Positions 24,030 to 38,700 of a stretch of 64,000 nucleotides of DNA are shown piece after piece. The first letter of the stretch is position 1; every line of letters starts with the position of its first letter. The notes under the pieces are model-generated. The model ran no database searches and was not told where the DNA came from. It saw only the letters and a list, made by a program, of their open reading frames with translations. The position numbers and the translations under genes are program-made. The stretch comes from Piromyces finnis finn (lineage: Eukaryota > Fungi > Neocallimastigomycota): contig MCFH01000082.1 in the NCBI GenBank assembly GCA_002104945.1, positions 120,886-184,885 of the forward strand, read 5' to 3'.

Positions 24030-29242
<5,213 letters not shown>

Positions 29243-30383: not shown

Positions 30384-32352
30384 ATAGTAGTAGTTTTCGA
30401 ACCTGTATCCGAATTTCTTCTTTATCTTATCCTTTCGATATCGACGCTAGCAATGGTTAGAGCAATGCTGTACTTATACAAATCAATCCTTGTATTTAAA
30501 GTCGCAAACAAATCACAATTAACATTATATTAGTAAGGAATTCTTCAAACTCCATAACATTAGGATATAAGAAAGAAGATTTTCGAAAAGGAAATTGAAA
30601 AATAATAATTAATCATTTTTTTTCCTCTTAACTAAATGTTTAATATAGTATTTCTGCCCGAGAAGAAAGTTAAGATTGTCTTCAAAAACAATTTTTAGAA
30701 TCATCCGAAATATTCAACAATTTTTCGTGAGCAATCAATGAAATAATTAATGAAAGTTAATCATCTACAAAATGAATGAACTAGTTTCTGAATTCATCAA
30801 ATTTTGAATAGGACAATATTCTATAAATAAAACTAGGAACATTATTAATAATATCATAACAAGAATAAACGTTGGTATGGGATGTCTGACACAAGGTTTC
30901 TTTTTAATAAAACTCTTCACATTCAAAAAACTTCAAGTGTAATATGTGTGAATTGAATTTATATATGAATTTTTTTTTTTTTAAATCCGTATTTATATTT
31001 ATTGTATCTTTTAGATTTATGGTCACTCATTAATTTGAAAAAGTCATTTTTCCCATTAGAATTTACTGATTTACTTTATATGTTTACTTTTATTAATCAT
31101 TTCTGGTGGTTCATGTATCATTGTCAGAATATTATTATTAACTAAATGGGCAATAATAAAAGAGGATTTTTTTTTTTTTTTTATTAGTTGAAACAATAAT
31201 TCTAAGCATTACTTAAAAAAAAAAATTAAAAAAGAATAAATTAACCACAAAATTAATTTTTAACTATTCATTTTCAAAATGAATGATTTCAATTTAAAAA
31301 ATTCATTAAATAACATTCCAAGATAGGTATATAGGAAAAAAAAAAAAAAAAAAAAAAAAAAAAGAATGGAGACACCATTATAACATTTGTTTTTATAGCA
31401 CAATAAAGAGAATAAAGAGTCGAAACATATTTCTTTTTTATATTTTTTTATTTACTTTTTAAAAAAATTACATAAAAATAATAATGGTTATATTCTTTAA
31501 AAAAAAAAAAAAAGTTTTTAAGATAAAATGAGTAAAAATAATAAAATATAAAATATAAAAAAAATACTTATTCTTCCTGTGTGCTAATACTTTGAATATT
31601 TTTCTCTACATAATTAAAAAAAAAAAATACTAATTATAAATATAAAACTTTGTTTTCTAATGTTTCCTTTTATCTTTTACAAAAAAAAAAAAAATAAAAA
31701 TAAATTATAATTAGTTTAATTGTTTTTTTTTTTTTTTTTTTTTTTTTTATCTTGTTTTTTATTTTATTTGTAAATATTTTTTTTTATTATTTTAACTTTT
31801 TTGTCCTTCATTTTGAGATAAATTTTAGAAACATTAAAAAATATTAACATTTAAAACAAAAAAAAAGAAAGAAGTAAAATTGCATTTAATAGTTTTTCTT
31901 TTCTTTAATATATTTTATATATATAACTTTCTATCAAATGCTTCTTTTTTATATATAAAAAAATCTTTCTTTTTAACTTTACCTCAAAAAATATGTACAT
32001 ATTTATTTATTTATTGGTAATAATAATAAAATATTAAAATATCCAAACGATTTCTTATATTGAAACTATTATTCCAAAATACATATATATATATACATTG
32101 TCAATTTCCTTTTTTTTTTTTTTTTTTAACTTTAAATGATTTTTCTTCTATAGATTTTTTAATTATTTTTATAAAATATAAATGAGTTATAGGAATAGTT
32201 AAAAATAAATATAGATTAATTTGATTTTGATTAGTTTATGCTTTTATTTATATTGATAAAAATAATTTGTAATAATAATTCACTATATAATATATGATAT
32301 AAAAAGTTAAAAAGTTATGATTTGATAATAATATTTAATAATTTTTATATAT

Positions 32353-35300
32353 TTAAACTTGTTGATATTTAACATCAACGTTTTTGTTATTTTTAATTTG
32401 TTTTTTGATTTGACGGTAGTATTTATAGGCGAAGCATCCAAGAACTAAAGCAAGTAAACCGGATTTACCATATACATACATATTAGTCTTCAAATCATTT
32501 AATTCACCAATTGTTTCAACAGCGTTTGGTAATGCGTTTGTGATTATTGCGTCATTAATTGAATCCCTCTTAGTAAGAATTTGTCCATCAATTTCTTCAA
32601 GTTCTTTTTCACCCATAGCTCTGAGTTTATTAACAACAAAGGATGGAGCACCAGCGGCTTCAGCTAAATCAGCAGCTCCTGCTAAAGTATAATCTCTACC
32701 TTGAGCTTCAGCTCTAGCTTGTGATTCTCTAGCCTTTTCAACTGCGAAATCTGGAGCTCCAAAAGCCTTAGCAATCTTACCAATATCAAAACCACTAAGA
32801 TCTCTCTTCTTAAGACCCTTTTGTCTGTTAATTTCTTCAAGTTCCTTTTCACCCATAGCTCTAAGTTTTTCAACAACAAAAGATGGAGCACCAGCAGCTT
32901 CAGCTAAATCAGCAGCACCAGCAATAGTAAGAGTTCTACCTTGAGCTTCGGCTCTAGCTTGTGATTCTCTAGCTTTTTCAATAGCAAATTCTGGAGCACC
33001 TAAGGATTCAGCAATCTTACCAATGTCATAACCTTGATAATCTCTCTTAGTAAGAATTTGTCCATCAATTTCTTCAAGTTCCTTTTCGCCCATAGCTCTA
33101 AGTTTTTCAACAACAAAAGATGGAGCACCAGCAGCTTCAGCTAAATCAGCAGCTCCTGCTAAAGTATAATCTCTACCTTGAGCTTCAGCTCTAGCTTGTG
33201 ATTCTCTAGCCTTTTCAACTGCGAAATCTGGAGCTCCAAAAGCCTTAGCAATCTTACCAATATCAAAACCACTAAGATCTCTCTTCTTAAGACCCTTTTG
33301 TCTGTTAATTTCTTCAAGTTCCTTTTCACCCATAGCTCTAAGTTTTTCAACAACAAAAGATGGAGCACCAGCAGCTTCAGCTAAATCAGCAGCACCAGCA
33401 ATAGTAAGAGTTCTACCTTGAGCTTCGGCTCTAGCTTGTGATTCTCTAGCTTTTTCAATAGCAAATTCTGGAGCACCTAAGGATTCAGCAATCTTACCAA
33501 TGTCATAACCTTGATAATCTCTCTTAGTAAGAATTTGTCCATCAATTTCTTCAAGTTCCTTTTCGCCCATAGCTCTAAGTTTTTCAACAACAAAAGATGG
33601 AGCACCAGCAGCTTCAGCTAAATCAGCAGCTCCTGCTAAAGTATAATCTCTACCTTGAGCTTCGGCTCTAGCTTGTGATTCTCTAGCCTTTTCAACTGCG
33701 AAATCTGGAGCTCCAAAAGCCTTAGCAACCTTACCAATATCAAAACCACTAAGATCTCTCTTCTTAAGACCCTTTTGTCTGTTAATTTCTTCAAGTTCCT
33801 TTTCGCCCATAGCTCTAAGTTTTTCAACAACAAAAGATGGAGCACCAGCAGCTTCAGCTAAATCAGCAGCACCAGCAATAGTAAGAGTTCTACCTTGAGC
33901 TTCGGCTCTAGCTTGTGATTCTCTAGCTTTTTCAATAGCAAATTCTGGAGCACCTAAGGATTCAGCAATCTTACCAATGTCATAACCTTGATAATCTCTC
34001 TTAGTAAGAATTTGTCCATCAATTTCTTCAAGTTCCTTTTCGCCCATAGCTCTAAGTTTTTCAACAACAAAAGATGGAGCACCAGCAGCTTCAGCTAAAT
34101 CAGCAGCTCCTGCTAAAGTATAATCTCTACCTTGAGCTTCGGCTCTAGCTTGTGATTCTCTAGCCTTTTCAACTGCGAAATCTGGAGCTCCAAAAGCCTT
34201 AGCAACCTTACCAATATCAAAACCACTAAGATCTCTCTTCTTAAGACCCTTTTGTCTGTTAATTTCTTCAAGTTCCTTTTCACCCATAGCTCTAAGTTTT
34301 TCAACAACAAAAGATGGAGCACCAGCAGCTTCAGCTAAATCAGCAGCACCAGCAATAGTAAGAGTTCTACCTTGAGCTTCGGCTCTAGCTTGTGATTCTC
34401 TAGCTTTTTCAATAGCAAATTCTGGAGCACCTAAGGATTCAGCAATCTTACCAATGTCATAACCTTGATAATCTCTCTTAGTAAGAATTTGTCCATCAAT
34501 TTCTTCAAGTTCCTTTTCGCCCATAGCTCTAAGTTTTTCAACAACAAAAGATGGAGCACCAGCAGCTTCAGCTAAATCAGCAGCTCCTGCTAAAGTATAA
34601 TCTCTACCTTGAGCTTCGGCTCTAGCTTGTGATTCTCTAGCCTTTTCAACTGCGAAATCTGGAGCTCCAAAAGCCTTAGCAACCTTACCAATATCAAAAC
34701 CACTAAGATCTCTCTTCTTAAGACCCTTTTGTCTGTTAATTTCTTCAAGTTCCTTTTCACCCATAGCTCTAAGTTTTTCAACAACAAAAGATGGAGCACC
34801 AGCAGCTTCAGCTAAATCAGCAGCACCAGCAATAGTAAGAGTTCTACCTTGAGCTTCGGCTCTAGCTTGTGATTCTCTAGCTTTTTCAATAGCAAATTCT
34901 GGAGCACCTAAGGATTCAGCAATCTTACCAATGTCATAACCTTGATAATCTCTCTTAGTAAGAATTTGTCCATCAATTTCTTCAAGTTCCTTTTCGCCCA
35001 TAGCTCTAAGTTTTTCAACAACAAAAGATGGAGCACCAGCAGCTTCAGCTAAATCAGCAGCTCCTGCTAAAGTATAATCTCTACCTTGAGCTTCAGCTCT
35101 AGCTTGTGATTCTCTAGCCTTTTCAACTGCGAAATCTGGAGCTCCAAAAGCCTTAGCAACCTTACCAATATCAAAACCACTAAGATCTCTCTTCTTAAGA
35201 CCCTTTTGTCTGTTAATTTCTTCAAGTTCCTTTTCGCCCATAGCTCTAAGTTTTTCAACAACAAAAGATGGAGCACCAGCAGCTTCAGCTAAATCAGCGG

Positions 35301-35766
35301 CACCAGCAATAGTAAGAGTTCTACCTTGAGCTTCGGCTCTAGCTTGTGATTCTCTAGCCTTTTCAATAGCAAATTCTGGAGCACCTAAGGATTCAGCAAT
35401 CTTACCAATGTCATAACCTTGGTAATCTCTCTTTTCATGTTTAATGAAATCATTATTGGTTATTTTACTCATTATTGTGTAGTTAATAGCATTAGTCATA
35501 AAATTGAAGAAATTGAAAATGACATCTGAGAACATAACTATGCAATATTGACCAATAGACTTAATATCCTTCTTACTAGTACCATAAAGGAAAAGAATTG
35601 AAGAAGTAGTAAGAATAATGTTTTCAATTAAATTAGAAGTGAAAAATTGATTAAATGAAATTCTTAATAAATTGTATACACAGAAAAGAATAGATGATAT
35701 TTGAAGACCCTTTTCTAATGGGGTTTTATACTGTTTTTGATTTTCTGTAATGTTTGTCTTTTCCAT
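32353..35766 (-). CDS. Putative 4-TM membrane protein with 12 KR-delimited tandem repeats (Kex2-processed repeat protein-like)
   Basis: 113-aa hydrophobic N-terminus ending in KR; 6 x (80 aa + 79 aa) units, each ending in KR (477-bp period); 70-aa tail with a TM segment and terminal YQQV. Confidence 0.9.
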   Translation of the reverse strand: MEKTNITENQKQYKTPLEKGLQISSILFCVYNLLRISFNQFFTSNLIENIILTTSSILFLYGTSKKDIKSIGQYCIVMFSDVIFNFFNFMTNAINYTIMSKITNNDFIKHEKRDYQGYDIGKIAESLGAPEFAIEKARESQARAEAQGRTLTIAGAADLAEAAGAPSFVVEKLRAMGEKELEEINRQKGLKKRDLSGFDIGKVAKAFGAPDFAVEKARESQARAEAQGRDYTLAGAADLAEAAGAPSFVVEKLRAMGEKELEEIDGQILTKRDYQGYDIGKIAESLGAPEFAIEKARESQARAEAQGRTLTIAGAADLAEAAGAPSFVVEKLRAMGEKELEEINRQKGLKKRDLSGFDIGKVAKAFGAPDFAVEKARESQARAEAQGRDYTLAGAADLAEAAGAPSFVVEKLRAMGEKELEEIDGQILTKRDYQGYDIGKIAESLGAPEFAIEKARESQARAEAQGRTLTIAGAADLAEAAGAPSFVVEKLRAMGEKELEEINRQKGLKKRDLSGFDIGKVAKAFGAPDFAVEKARESQARAEAQGRDYTLAGAADLAEAAGAPSFVVEKLRAMGEKELEEIDGQILTKRDYQGYDIGKIAESLGAPEFAIEKARESQARAEAQGRTLTIAGAADLAEAAGAPSFVVEKLRAMGEKELEEINRQKGLKKRDLSGFDIGKVAKAFGAPDFAVEKARESQARAEAQGRDYTLAGAADLAEAAGAPSFVVEKLRAMGEKELEEIDGQILTKRDYQGYDIGKIAESLGAPEFAIEKARESQARAEAQGRTLTIAGAADLAEAAGAPSFVVEKLRAMGEKELEEINRQKGLKKRDLSGFDIGKIAKAFGAPDFAVEKARESQARAEAQGRDYTLAGAADLAEAAGAPSFVVEKLRAMGEKELEEIDGQILTKRDYQGYDIGKIAESLGAPEFAIEKARESQARAEAQGRTLTIAGAADLAEAAGAPSFVVEKLRAMGEKELEEINRQKGLKKRDLSGFDIGKIAKAFGAPDFAVEKARESQARAEAQGRDYTLAGAADLAEAAGAPSFVVNKLRAMGEKELEEIDGQILTKRDSINDAIITNALPNAVETIGELNDLKTNMYVYGKSGLLALVLGCFAYKYYRQIKKQIKNNKNVDVKYQQV

Positions 35767-38700
35767 GTCTGGATTTTATTGATTTAATTTATATATTAAT
35801 GTGATATAGGTAATCATTTAATTGAAATTTTAACAATTTTACAAAGAATTATTATTTTTATATTTTCAAGTTTATATATTATTATTATATTTTATAATAT
35901 AGAAAATAAAAAAATTCATTATAAATAATTAATATATAATTAAAAAAATATTTTATTTTTTTAGTTTTTATTATTCAATTCTACTCTATTTAAAGTAATT
36001 CTACTTTACCTAAGAATGATTATTAATGTATATTAATTGTAATACTTTTCAAAAAAAATATTGGATAATAATGATAAATTAATTGTTTTTTTTTTTAAAA
36101 AGTAAATAAAATAATCTTTATTTACTTTTTTATTTAGAAATTTATTAAATTTATAATATGTTTTGATTAACTATTTAAAATATTATAGGATATTTAAAAA
36201 AAAAAAAAAAAAAAAATTAGTTTATTGCTTTTTCTTTTGTTTTCTGCTTATATTTATTTTATTGATTTTTACTCTATTTAAAAAAAGATTGTTTTCTATT
36301 TTCTTTTTTAATCTAATTTGATTAATTTACTTTTGTTTTTTTTTTTTTTTGTTTGTTTGTTTTTTTGTTTTTTTTTTTATTGTCATTATTATTATTTTAT
36401 TTACTTTGATTTTTAAATTTGTGATTTATTATCAAATCATTAAAAAAATCAGATGGAGCATCAATAAAAAAAAAAACAATTGATTATATAAAGATTACTC
36501 TCTTCTAATTAAGACAAAAAAAAAAAAAGTTGGACAAAAAAGTATAATTTAGAGAATTATTTCCCATAAAACACCATAAAATTGGTTTAAAAAGTGGTGT
36601 ACAATTTAATTAATTAAATAATAAAAAAAACTTTATATATAAATGACTAATTTTTTTATTTATATTAATAATTTTAAGTGGTTTTATCTAAAAACCTTAT
36701 TTAATATAATTATTAAATATTCTTTTTTTAAAATTAAGTTGTTACCAAACTTTATTTCATAATTATTTATAAACTGAATAAGAAAAAAGGATCTAATCAA
36801 TAATAAATATGCTATGGCTTTTTTTAATTTTTAATCATATGTTTTTCATGTTATCACACTAAATTTATGAAATAAAAACATATATTTCCCAATAAAAAGT
36901 CTGTAAAGTTTCCAATTTGTTTAATTTTTATTCACCAAAAAAAAATGTAACCAAATTTAGTATATTTAATAATTAATTTAAAACTTTATTTATTATAAAA
37001 TTTAGTTATGAATTTTTAAAAAACTTTAATTATAATAAATTAAATGAAAAAGATTTTTATACATAAAACCTCCAACAAAAATAATTCATTCTTAATACTT
37101 TCTTCTTTCCTTATAAAAAATAATGATAGATAGCAATTATTAAATTTATATTAACCGTAATGAATGTATTAGTATATTAAAGTATATTTGATGATCTATC
37201 ACTTATTAAGCATTATTTATTTTTATGTATCTTATATTTTAAAATAATATTCATATCATATCATTAATTATGTAAATGTATACATATATAAAATATAAAT
37301 TATGAACTGTGTGACAATACTTTAAAATCAAGCCACATAAAGAAATTTTCCACAACATTTCTATTTGGTTTACATAAAATATTAAAATGGCATTTATTAT
37401 ATAATCTAATTAATATAATTGAAGTTAATATTAATTAATATATTATTTATTAAAATATATAATATCTAATTATATATTTTAATATTTTGGTAACAAATCC
37501 ACTTGAAAAATAATTTATTAAATAAAGTTACAATAAAAAGTAATTTATATTAATATATGTTATAATATATATATAGTACAATAAAGAAATATATAAAATA
37601 TATTAAATTTTTCAAATTTCTTAAGAATGTTCATATAAAGATTATTGATAAGCAGTATTAAAAAGTTTTACAATTTTAATTCTATTTCCTATTTAAATTG
37701 AATTTATATATTACATTCTAATATATATTAAAATTTTCTTTTATGAATTGTTTTTCATAAAAAATTGTAACATCCTAAATGATCCAATAAATAAATAAAT
37801 GTTGTGTAACATTAAATAAAATAAATTTACTATTAATTAATTAGTTTCATATTTTTTAGTGAAATATCTTAATTTGAAATATATGATGTTGTAGGTTAAG
37901 TTATTAAAAGAAATAGCCAGAAAGATTAGGACATTCTAATATAAAAAAATTAAAATTAATAATTAATGAATAAGCATTTAATAAGAAACTATTAGGAAAA
38001 AATTTATTTTTTCAAGCTTCCCTTTCTTGTTTTTTTTTATTATTCTTTGTTTCAAATTATTTCACCTAAAAAATCTTTTCATAAAAAGGTAAAAATATAA
38101 AACATAAATATATTAAATCCTAATCTTTTATATAAATCGATTTTCTTTAATTCATTAATATGAAACATTTTTATTAAAATAATTAATAAATTAACTTTTA
38201 TTTTATTGTACTACATTTATAAAATTCATTACATTTATTGTAAGTTGTTACTACATTTTATATTGTAATGTATTTGATTAATGTAAAATAAAATTACACT
38301 AGAATTTTTTATTTAACTATTATTATATTTATTCATTTACTTTAAAATTATAATATTATAAGATTAGATTATACAATTAAGCAAAAAATTAAAGATTCAA
38401 AAAAAAAAAAGAAATATAAGTAAGGAAAAAATGAAAATAACTTAATGAATGATATAGTATTATTCTTAATAAATACTTTATTGATTAAAAATGAAATAAG
38501 TTTACCAATATTAAAGTAAAAAAAAAATAACTATACCATAATGATATATATAAAAAATATTAGGTTATATTCAAATTTAGATTTTATTGAAATTTTTTCT
38601 TTTTTTTAAATTCAAATTTCTTTTTATATTCATATCAGTAGGTATTTGTGGGAAAATAGTTTAAAAATTAATTAAGTAGTATACTTTATTCATAACTATA

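Follow-up and report, generated by a model that had tools for sequence, protein, structure and literature searches.

A candidate kexin-processed membrane precursor with twelve folded modules in the anaerobic gut fungus Piromyces finnis

What does a fungal cell make from a gene whose product strings together twelve modules of two similar kinds, closes each of them with Lys-Arg (KR) and carries hydrophobic segments at both ends? The question is raised by a 3414-nt open reading frame (ORF) on the minus strand of a 64,000-nt stretch of Piromyces finnis DNA (the window; contig MCFH01000082.1, positions 120,886 to 184,885). An earlier note, made from the letters alone, had read the ORF as a membrane-tethered polyprotein with a lumenal repeat loop that Kex2 could cut into about 12 small proteins, possibly surface, antimicrobial or adhesion peptides. 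That interpretation was partly supported by the computational analysis described here. The architecture and a membrane-anchored, extracellular-type placement of the modules are the firmer parts, release of the modules by a kexin is somewhat favoured, the suggested family affiliation was not supported, and one of the suggested kinds of cargo is unlikely.

The DNA of the ORF is base-for-base identical to the interval of gene BCR36DRAFT_587896 on GenBank contig MCFH01000082.1, as found by sequence comparison, and the array is thus no artefact of the window. Every countable item of the earlier description was recovered, including three plus one hydrophobic segments, 12 modules, 13 KR dipeptides and the C-terminal YQQV. 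Cutting the translation after each KR yields a 113-residue N-terminal part, 12 modules in which an 80-residue A alternates with a 79-residue B, and a 70-residue C-terminal part (Table 1). Tandem Repeats Finder reports a period of 477 nt in 6.0 copies with 99% matches, and a sub-period of 240 nt at 84%. About 14 nucleotide positions vary among the six units and all but three of these are synonymous, the three falling in two codons (V90I and E138N). Differences that are nearly all synonymous indicate that the array is real coding sequence and not a product of chance; the GC content at third codon positions is 14%, which is host-like and as in the surrounding genome. The two-fold character that had been noticed within each module was also confirmed, as 16 half-modules from two species align with an invariant Ala and Gly-Ala-Pro (A..G-A-P), marking the module as an internal duplication.

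Table 1. Features of the P. finnis gene; positions are those of the window.
Feature	Positions	Strand	Extent in protein	Remarks
Whole ORF	32353..35766	minus	1137 aa + stop	intronless; P. finnis gene BCR36DRAFT_587896
N-terminal anchor domain	35428..35766	minus	aa 1-113	polar 20-aa head and three hydrophobic helices; ends HEKR
First KR	35428..35433	minus	aa 112-113	anchor/module 1 junction; kept in the Piromyces E2 and P0003 orthologues
12-module array	32566..35427	minus	aa 114-1067	six 477-nt A+B units; modules end L-x-K-R, then D
Module A, first copy	35188..35427	minus	80 aa	four helices predicted
Module B, first copy	34951..35187	minus	79 aa	77% identity with module A
Stretch taken out as 'intron' by the ORX41619.1 model	32923..34590	minus		1668 nt; cut possibly up to 93 nt further along
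Juxtamembrane stalk	32482..32565	minus	aa 1068-1095	conserved; after the last KR
Fourth membrane helix	32425..32481	minus	aa about 1096-1114	small-residue-rich; kept across genera
Basic cytoplasmic tail (predicted)	32356..32424	minus	aa 1115-1137	net charge +6; ends YQQV

An exhaustive phmmer search of 1.84 billion representatives returned 13 proteins, eight of which are true relatives; P0008 and P0010-P0012 of that search are unrelated repeat proteins. All five relatives with a named source come from anaerobic gut fungi, and the other three of the eight come from metagenome assemblies. A word search with the whole protein found a single orthologue, PIROE2DRAFT_8090 of Piromyces sp. E2. The same kind of search found nothing with one module as the query and no new member with the metagenome orthologue P0003, and no relative was confirmed when bacterial and archaeal genomes and JGI metagenome contigs were scanned with the unit alignment. 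A hidden Markov model (HMM) of the module, built in the course of the analysis, delimits a core of ~70 residues in every member, with an alignment of 29 modules.

The members occur in two forms. The '3+1' anchor type, with three N-terminal helices and one C-terminal helix, includes the Piromyces E2 protein (887 aa, 8 modules), P0003 (439 aa, 3 modules, from four metagenome assemblies), two proteins of Anaeromyces robustus (ORX84313.1, P0006, with one module, and the partial ORX84312.1, P0004) and P0007/P0014, which lack the N-terminus. The type I form comprises a P. finnis paralogue, ORX40363.1 (P0005), and the metagenome proteins P0009 and P0017-P0019. P0005 has a signal-peptide-like start with a Kyte-Doolittle (KD) hydropathy of 2.1-2.5, and the type I members share long inter-module linkers, a C-terminal helix of KD 3.2-3.8 and a very short tail. 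Adjoining ORX84313.1 in A. robustus is a 989-residue ORF (MCFG01000054.1, L009:8498-11467) that the searches did not return full-length; it has the same N-terminal domain, fourth helix and tail, and contains seven modules by eye or six by the module HMM. Its N-terminal domain differs from that of ORX84312.1, and A. robustus thus has at least three tandem or nearby paralogues. Judged from these sequences, the module appears to define a family of extracellular domains that is new and occurs in anaerobic gut fungi only.

One further protein, P0013 (L010:3631-5448 and L011:2757-4574), has 605 residues and a signal-peptide-like start, and is encoded in a dense, prokaryote-like gene row of a metagenome assembly. 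Two stretches of 30-40 residues share 42-46% identity with the second half-module (G-A-A-N-x-A-x-x-x-G-A-P...L-x-G-M); the neighbouring genes are without Pfam matches except for one TPR protein. The likeness may reflect convergence, a shared ancestral hairpin or transfer.

The three N-terminal hydrophobic helices of the P. finnis protein span about aa 21-39, 44-62 and 73-99. They contain conserved buried charges (R/K35, E48, which is Ala in one member, and the invariant D81), and helix 4 is rich in Gly, Ser and Ala; these features suggest that the helices pack into a bundle and are more than a simple anchor. Among the Piromyces orthologues, identity is 68-72% in the N-terminal domain, compared with 42-59% for the modules, and the Anaeromyces N-terminal domain retains 39-42%. 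Over its C-terminal part, the Piromyces E2 protein is 77% identical to that of P. finnis. The hydrophobic segments of P. finnis are weak, with KD 19-residue maxima of 1.25-1.37 and negative Wimley-White octanol sums, and the homologous segments of the Anaeromyces relative reach KD 1.77-2.19. The repeat region is far from any membrane character, with a minimum Wimley-White sum of +8.

Charges around the helices point to the orientation. In each of the six anchored members the tail that follows helix 4 has a net charge of +2 to +6, against -2 to +2 for the 15 residues ahead of that helix; the N-terminal head has 0 to +2 and the helix 2-3 loop +1 to +2. By the positive-inside rule, this pattern agrees with a four-pass protein that has both termini inside (N-in, C-in). 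The relatives are informative about the loop. The linkers of P0005 are 53% Thr and 20% His, and those of P0009 are rich in Asn, Ser and Thr; mucin-like Thr/Ser stalks are typical of extracellular regions. Because the modules of relatives follow a signal peptide and lie between mucin-like linkers, the loop would face the lumen or the outside. In the 989-residue A. robustus ORF, which has the same 3+1 anchor, the linkers are of a Thr/Ser/Lys type, 57-74 residues long and 40-53% Ser+Thr, thus indicating that the loop is of extracellular type in the anchored form itself. The signal-peptide paralogue, the mucin-like linkers beside the same anchor and the basic tails together support the lumenal loop that the earlier note had proposed, and we regard it as very probable that the protein is a membrane protein bearing extracellular domains.

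The P. finnis protein resembles tetraspanin and LAPTM-type proteins in its number of helices (four), in the large loop that separates helix 3 from helix 4 and in the Tyr pattern of its short, basic C-terminal tail; unlike them, it has no CCG motif or loop cysteines, and its helix 1-2 loop is only a few residues long. Tetraspanin (PF00335) was rejected, as there is no Pfam match and the only three Cys residues (aa 29, 75 and 1111) all lie outside the loop. The resemblance to an LAPTM/DUF4728-like tetraspan that had been suggested by eye was likewise not upheld by Pfam: neither LAPTM/Mtp (PF03821) nor DUF4728 is listed when five N-terminal domains are run through hmmscan (E up to 10), and the three families that are listed, Reticulon, p53-inducible11 and CKI, each match a single member with a score below threshold. 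The terminal YQQV (32356-32367) is a YxxPhi-type pattern at the extreme C-terminus that is kept in three Piromyces-clade orthologues only and not in Anaeromyces.

The case for cleavage depends on the KR sites. Each of the 13 KR dipeptides is followed by Asp, and the 1137 residues contain no other KR or RR. Dibasic sites in the loop number 13 in P. finnis, 5 in Piromyces E2 and 4 in P0003, and all 22 are located at module or unit boundaries. Of these, 19 (12, 4 and 3, respectively) lie directly upstream of a module start, a class that accounts for only 15-18% of loop positions, while the remaining three, one per protein, lie just ahead of the C-terminal stalk. Because the sites of a single array are copies of one another, it is the cross-species comparison that counts as independent evidence. 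The junction between anchor and module 1 reads HEKR in P. finnis, LKKR in E2 and HEKR in P0003; in the same order, the last junction reads LTKR, LVKR and FSKR, and the unit ends read LTKR, LSKR and FSKR. The linkers are otherwise dissimilar in sequence and in length (~5-22 residues between module cores), bar an ending of the G-Q-x-L-x-K-R type. Retention of KR at the boundaries and at both anchor junctions in three orthologues with such unlike linkers makes the sites look selected.

At most KR sites P4 is aliphatic, and P1' is D, E or Q; both agree with the preferences of Kex2, and fungal kexins usually cut KR dipeptides that lie exposed in a flexible linker on the lumenal side. When one A+B unit was modelled with AlphaFold, confidence was lowest at the two KR linkers, which are predicted to be flexible. 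KR is present at the A-B junction in both P. finnis and P0003. It also abuts a module start in distant members, as IEKR before A in P0005, LEKR before G in P0014 and, twice, NIEKR before G in the A. robustus ORF, and P0014 has NEKR before E ~16 residues ahead of another module. On this sequence comparison we lean towards a kexin cleavage step that would convert the array into free modules. In P0014, at residues about 70-100 and 225-245, two modules each follow a short Cys-containing piece between two dibasic sites (KKR-x-C-x-V...EKR), which looks like a small excisable propeptide.

A mechanism is proposed in which the protein would be inserted co-translationally as a four-pass protein, with the 954-residue array as a loop in the lumen of the endoplasmic reticulum (ER) and Golgi. 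The linkers between modules, of 7-8 residues and presumably flexible, end in L-x-K-R followed by Asp, and a kexin (Kex2-type) in the late Golgi would cut after each of the 13 KR. Twelve soluble, acidic, helical domains of ~8 kDa would be freed for secretion or deposition at the cell surface, leaving a three-helix N-terminal stub and a one-helix C-terminal stub. The latter has a LAMP/CD63-like Tyr-x-x-Val at its very end and could go to the endosome or vacuole via YQQV. Taken as a whole, from four-pass insertion and kexin cutting to twelve freed domains and two stubs, this chain of events is rather to be expected than not. What becomes of the stubs, what YQQV does and what a free domain would bind we infer; because relatives display the domain on mucin-like surface stalks, our best guess is a role outside the cell, in binding or as a coat. 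More speculatively, the 3+1 anchor could be a dedicated signal-peptide-free carrier of cleavable cargo, with the stubs staying paired and being retrieved or degraded via YQQV, and with an abundant freed 8-kDa domain acting on plant fibre, on microbes nearby or at the surface of the fungus itself; this extension is less likely than not.

The strongest competing explanation is an uncleaved surface protein, in which the twelve modules stay tethered between two anchors and serve as a coat or adhesin of repetitive build, the KR dipeptides being merely incidental to short basic linkers. Permanently tethered modules, on mucin-like stalks and with few or no KR, are indeed seen in P0005, P0009/P0019, P0006 and the Anaeromyces ORF, and concerted evolution of the units reduces the 12 internal KR to only two or three independent sites. 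Several observations weigh against the cleaved, membrane-anchored precursor. Piromyces E2 has no KR at its A-B junctions, and cutting there would give units of ~176 aa; in the Anaeromyces relatives the linkers are long and KR sites are few or absent, and the domain thus works tethered elsewhere. The hydrophobic segments of P. finnis stay under the classical KD threshold of 1.6, the module models are of moderate confidence only (pLDDT 63-72), and the type (RNA or DNA) of the public sequencing runs that carry the ORF is a guess. Given the relatives in which the module stays tethered and KR is rare or absent, release would be a lineage-specific option and not a property intrinsic to the domain. 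An uncleaved protein does not readily account for KR being kept at 11 of 12 junction classes over the three orthologues despite linker divergence, with both anchor junctions included, nor for the aliphatic P4 at most sites, the D/E/Q at P1' and the lack of a dibasic site inside any module of the three orthologues. We consider the uncleaved protein less likely than the kexin-cut precursor.

Such a precursor can be compared with the fungal Kex2-processed repeat proteins (KEPs), which include alpha-factor, Ustilago Rep1, Candida Ece1 and ustiloxin-type precursors (PMC7329392, PMC6339444). As in KEPs, tandem near-identical units, each with a terminal KR, are found in a lumenal protein and many products per precursor are possible; the KEP repeat feature of tandem units separated by KR or RR is present, with 12 modules and 13 KR, all at boundaries. 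In contrast to KEPs, which have an N-terminal signal peptide, are soluble and consist mostly of short-peptide units, the P. finnis protein combines 3+1 membrane helices with folded domains of ~80 residues. Hydropathy and conservation revealed no N-terminal cleavable signal peptide in the P. finnis protein, as the polar 20-residue head is followed by three conserved hydrophobic helices with buried charges. The proteins mined in published KEP surveys are restricted to those for which a signal peptide is predicted (PMC7329392), and the P. finnis protein would therefore be missed.

The closest analogue in mode of production is provided by nematode polyprotein allergens such as Ascaris ABA-1 (PMC3079579), which are likewise large tandem polyproteins cut at dibasic sites and hold many copies of a small, helix-rich, internally duplicated unit. 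They differ in being soluble secretory precursors with lipid-binding units of ~15 kDa, and PDB profile and fold searches revealed no likeness to ABA-1 in sequence or fold. A literature search found no fungal precursor in which two membrane anchors flank an array of folded domains delimited by KR, and to our knowledge none has been described. If cleavage takes place, Kex2-type precursors would extend from soluble, signal-peptide-led proteins to a multi-pass membrane protein, and their products from short peptides to folded domains. If the anchor is in addition a dedicated carrier, this would be a new route of secreted-protein production in fungi, and one that secretome and KEP surveys built on signal peptides would not see. 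In any case, the P. finnis protein will be absent from secretome predictions for which a signal peptide is a requirement. Anaerobic gut fungi matter for herbivore fibre digestion and for biotechnology, and their surface biology is almost unknown; a family found in three settings, as a cleavable array, in mucin-stalk display and as a single copy, is a natural experiment on tethered versus released function.

The module itself, as modelled, matches no known fold. With the 29-module alignment, AlphaFold places helices at residues 7-13, 18-33, 40-50 and 54-78, with a mean predicted local distance difference test score (pLDDT) of 71.8; a two-module model is weaker (pLDDT 62.8). Foldseek against the PDB gave nothing significant (E >=0.56 for the unit and >=1.2 for the module). 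VIA-align against 48,161 chains reached a best Z of 6.3, the noise level for small helical proteins. A fold search of the ESM Atlas returned a heterogeneous list with template-modelling (TM) scores of 0.41-0.61, a search of the Atlas by features gave no usable match for the unit and scores all <0.9 for the N-terminal domain, and a PDB sequence search with one A+B unit found no match. Whole-protein Pfam and NCBIfam scores (DNA_pol3_delta_C, Myco_19_kDa, Sigma70_r4) were discarded as sums over 12 repeats, single modules being below every cut-off.

Among Pfam families, a bacterial one comes nearest. DUF2795 (PF11387) is the most recurrent match (14 of 29 modules) and shares the helix-G-A-P-helix hairpin of the half-module; the match is partial (profile positions 19-49 of 54), only one module exceeds the gathering score (26.9 vs 25 bits), and the Pfam description gives no function. 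One weak signal alone recurred across the fold and profile searches: the half-module profile matches residues 135-163 in the helical insert of the DsbA-like MdbA of Corynebacterium (PDB 5c00; E 7e-4), for which Foldseek against the module gave a TM of 0.56 over 63 columns at E 2.5, the structural scores all being below significance. Further DsbA likeness consists of a 'DsbA family' row in the Atlas (TM 0.51) and a Pfam DSBA match (E 0.014). Unlike DsbA and MdbA, the module has no thioredoxin fold and no Cys, and the likeness probably reflects a common two-helix hairpin, h-A-x-x-L-G-x-P-x-x-V-x-K, that profile searches also met in NAD synthetases. The net charge of the modules is -1 and -4 before any trimming. 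As slightly acidic, folded domains of ~8 kDa, they are unlikely to be cationic antimicrobial peptides, a kind of cargo that had been among the earlier suggestions.

A proposal about function that fits either cleavage state is that the modules are degenerate LysM-type glycan binders of chitin or peptidoglycan. The UniRef name of P0005 is 'LysM domain-containing protein', P0003 has one weak LysM1_NFP_LYK match (E 0.0017), and the first half-module can be aligned by eye with the LysM core pattern. However, the list of the 25 families most widely shared by the 29 modules (E up to 10) lacks PF01476, whereas the positive controls E. coli MltD and NlpD scored 111 and 47 bits, and profile and fold searches of the PDB brought up no LysM chain. 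The LysM fold is beta-alpha-alpha-beta and the AlphaFold models are all-helical; with no listed profile match either, membership in LysM was rejected and a glycan-binding role of this type appears improbable.

Still less probable is a cytosolic or nucleoplasmic array, in which helix-turn-helix (HTH)-like modules would bind nucleic acid or cytosolic partners on an anchor in the ER or nuclear membrane. It could explain why the modules give weak Pfam echoes of HTH families (Sigma70_r4, HTH_3, HTH_26, Rho_N) and have neither Cys nor an N-glycosylation sequon, but every HTH match is below threshold and spans only a two-helix hairpin. The signal peptide of the paralogue, the mucin-like linkers in relatives, one of them with the same anchor, and the strongly basic tail after helix 4 are at odds with a cytosolic loop and favour the lumenal one.

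The gene is represented in public databases by a shorter protein, ORX41619.1 (P0002), which has 581 residues and five modules and is drawn on the same 3414-nt interval. Its 'intron' is in-frame and consists of 3.5 repeat units of coding sequence. All 94 cut positions that reproduce ORX41619.1 were tested and none has GT-AG or GC-AG ends, which indicates that the intron is an artefact, most likely of a collapsed short-read transcript. The uninterrupted 1137-residue ORF is probably the better model, the GenBank protein being 556 aa too short; the Piromyces sp. E2 orthologue and the Anaeromyces robustus relative are also single-exon genes. That the length of the array is instead an assembly artefact and the 581-residue model the true gene, as its five modules and the collapse of repeats in short-read contigs might suggest, is scarcely credible given that the interval is the same 3414 nt, that 1668 nt of in-frame coding repeat lack GT-AG or GC-AG ends at every one of the 94 positions, and that the units bear distinct synonymous differences.

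The ORF sequence is present in four public runs of three studies, whose type was guessed to be RNA. Contigs of these runs were aligned to 1151 bases of the locus. Short repeat contigs have a very high word depth, one contig (336 nt, run X4) joins module 1 to the N-terminal domain and reaches 40 nt from the ATG, and the 630 nt upstream of the ATG have almost no contig coverage. The contigs are compatible with a well-expressed transcript that starts near the ATG, and prove neither point.

The next gene downstream on the same strand encodes a 909-residue ankyrin-repeat protein (26513-29242, minus; Ank_2, E 6.5e-94), with no link to the polyprotein seen. Long T-rich tracts lie on either side of the polyprotein gene (31715-31793 and 36331-36383). 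The intergenic DNA there has 15-20% GC, against which the repeat array, at 40% GC, is conspicuous.

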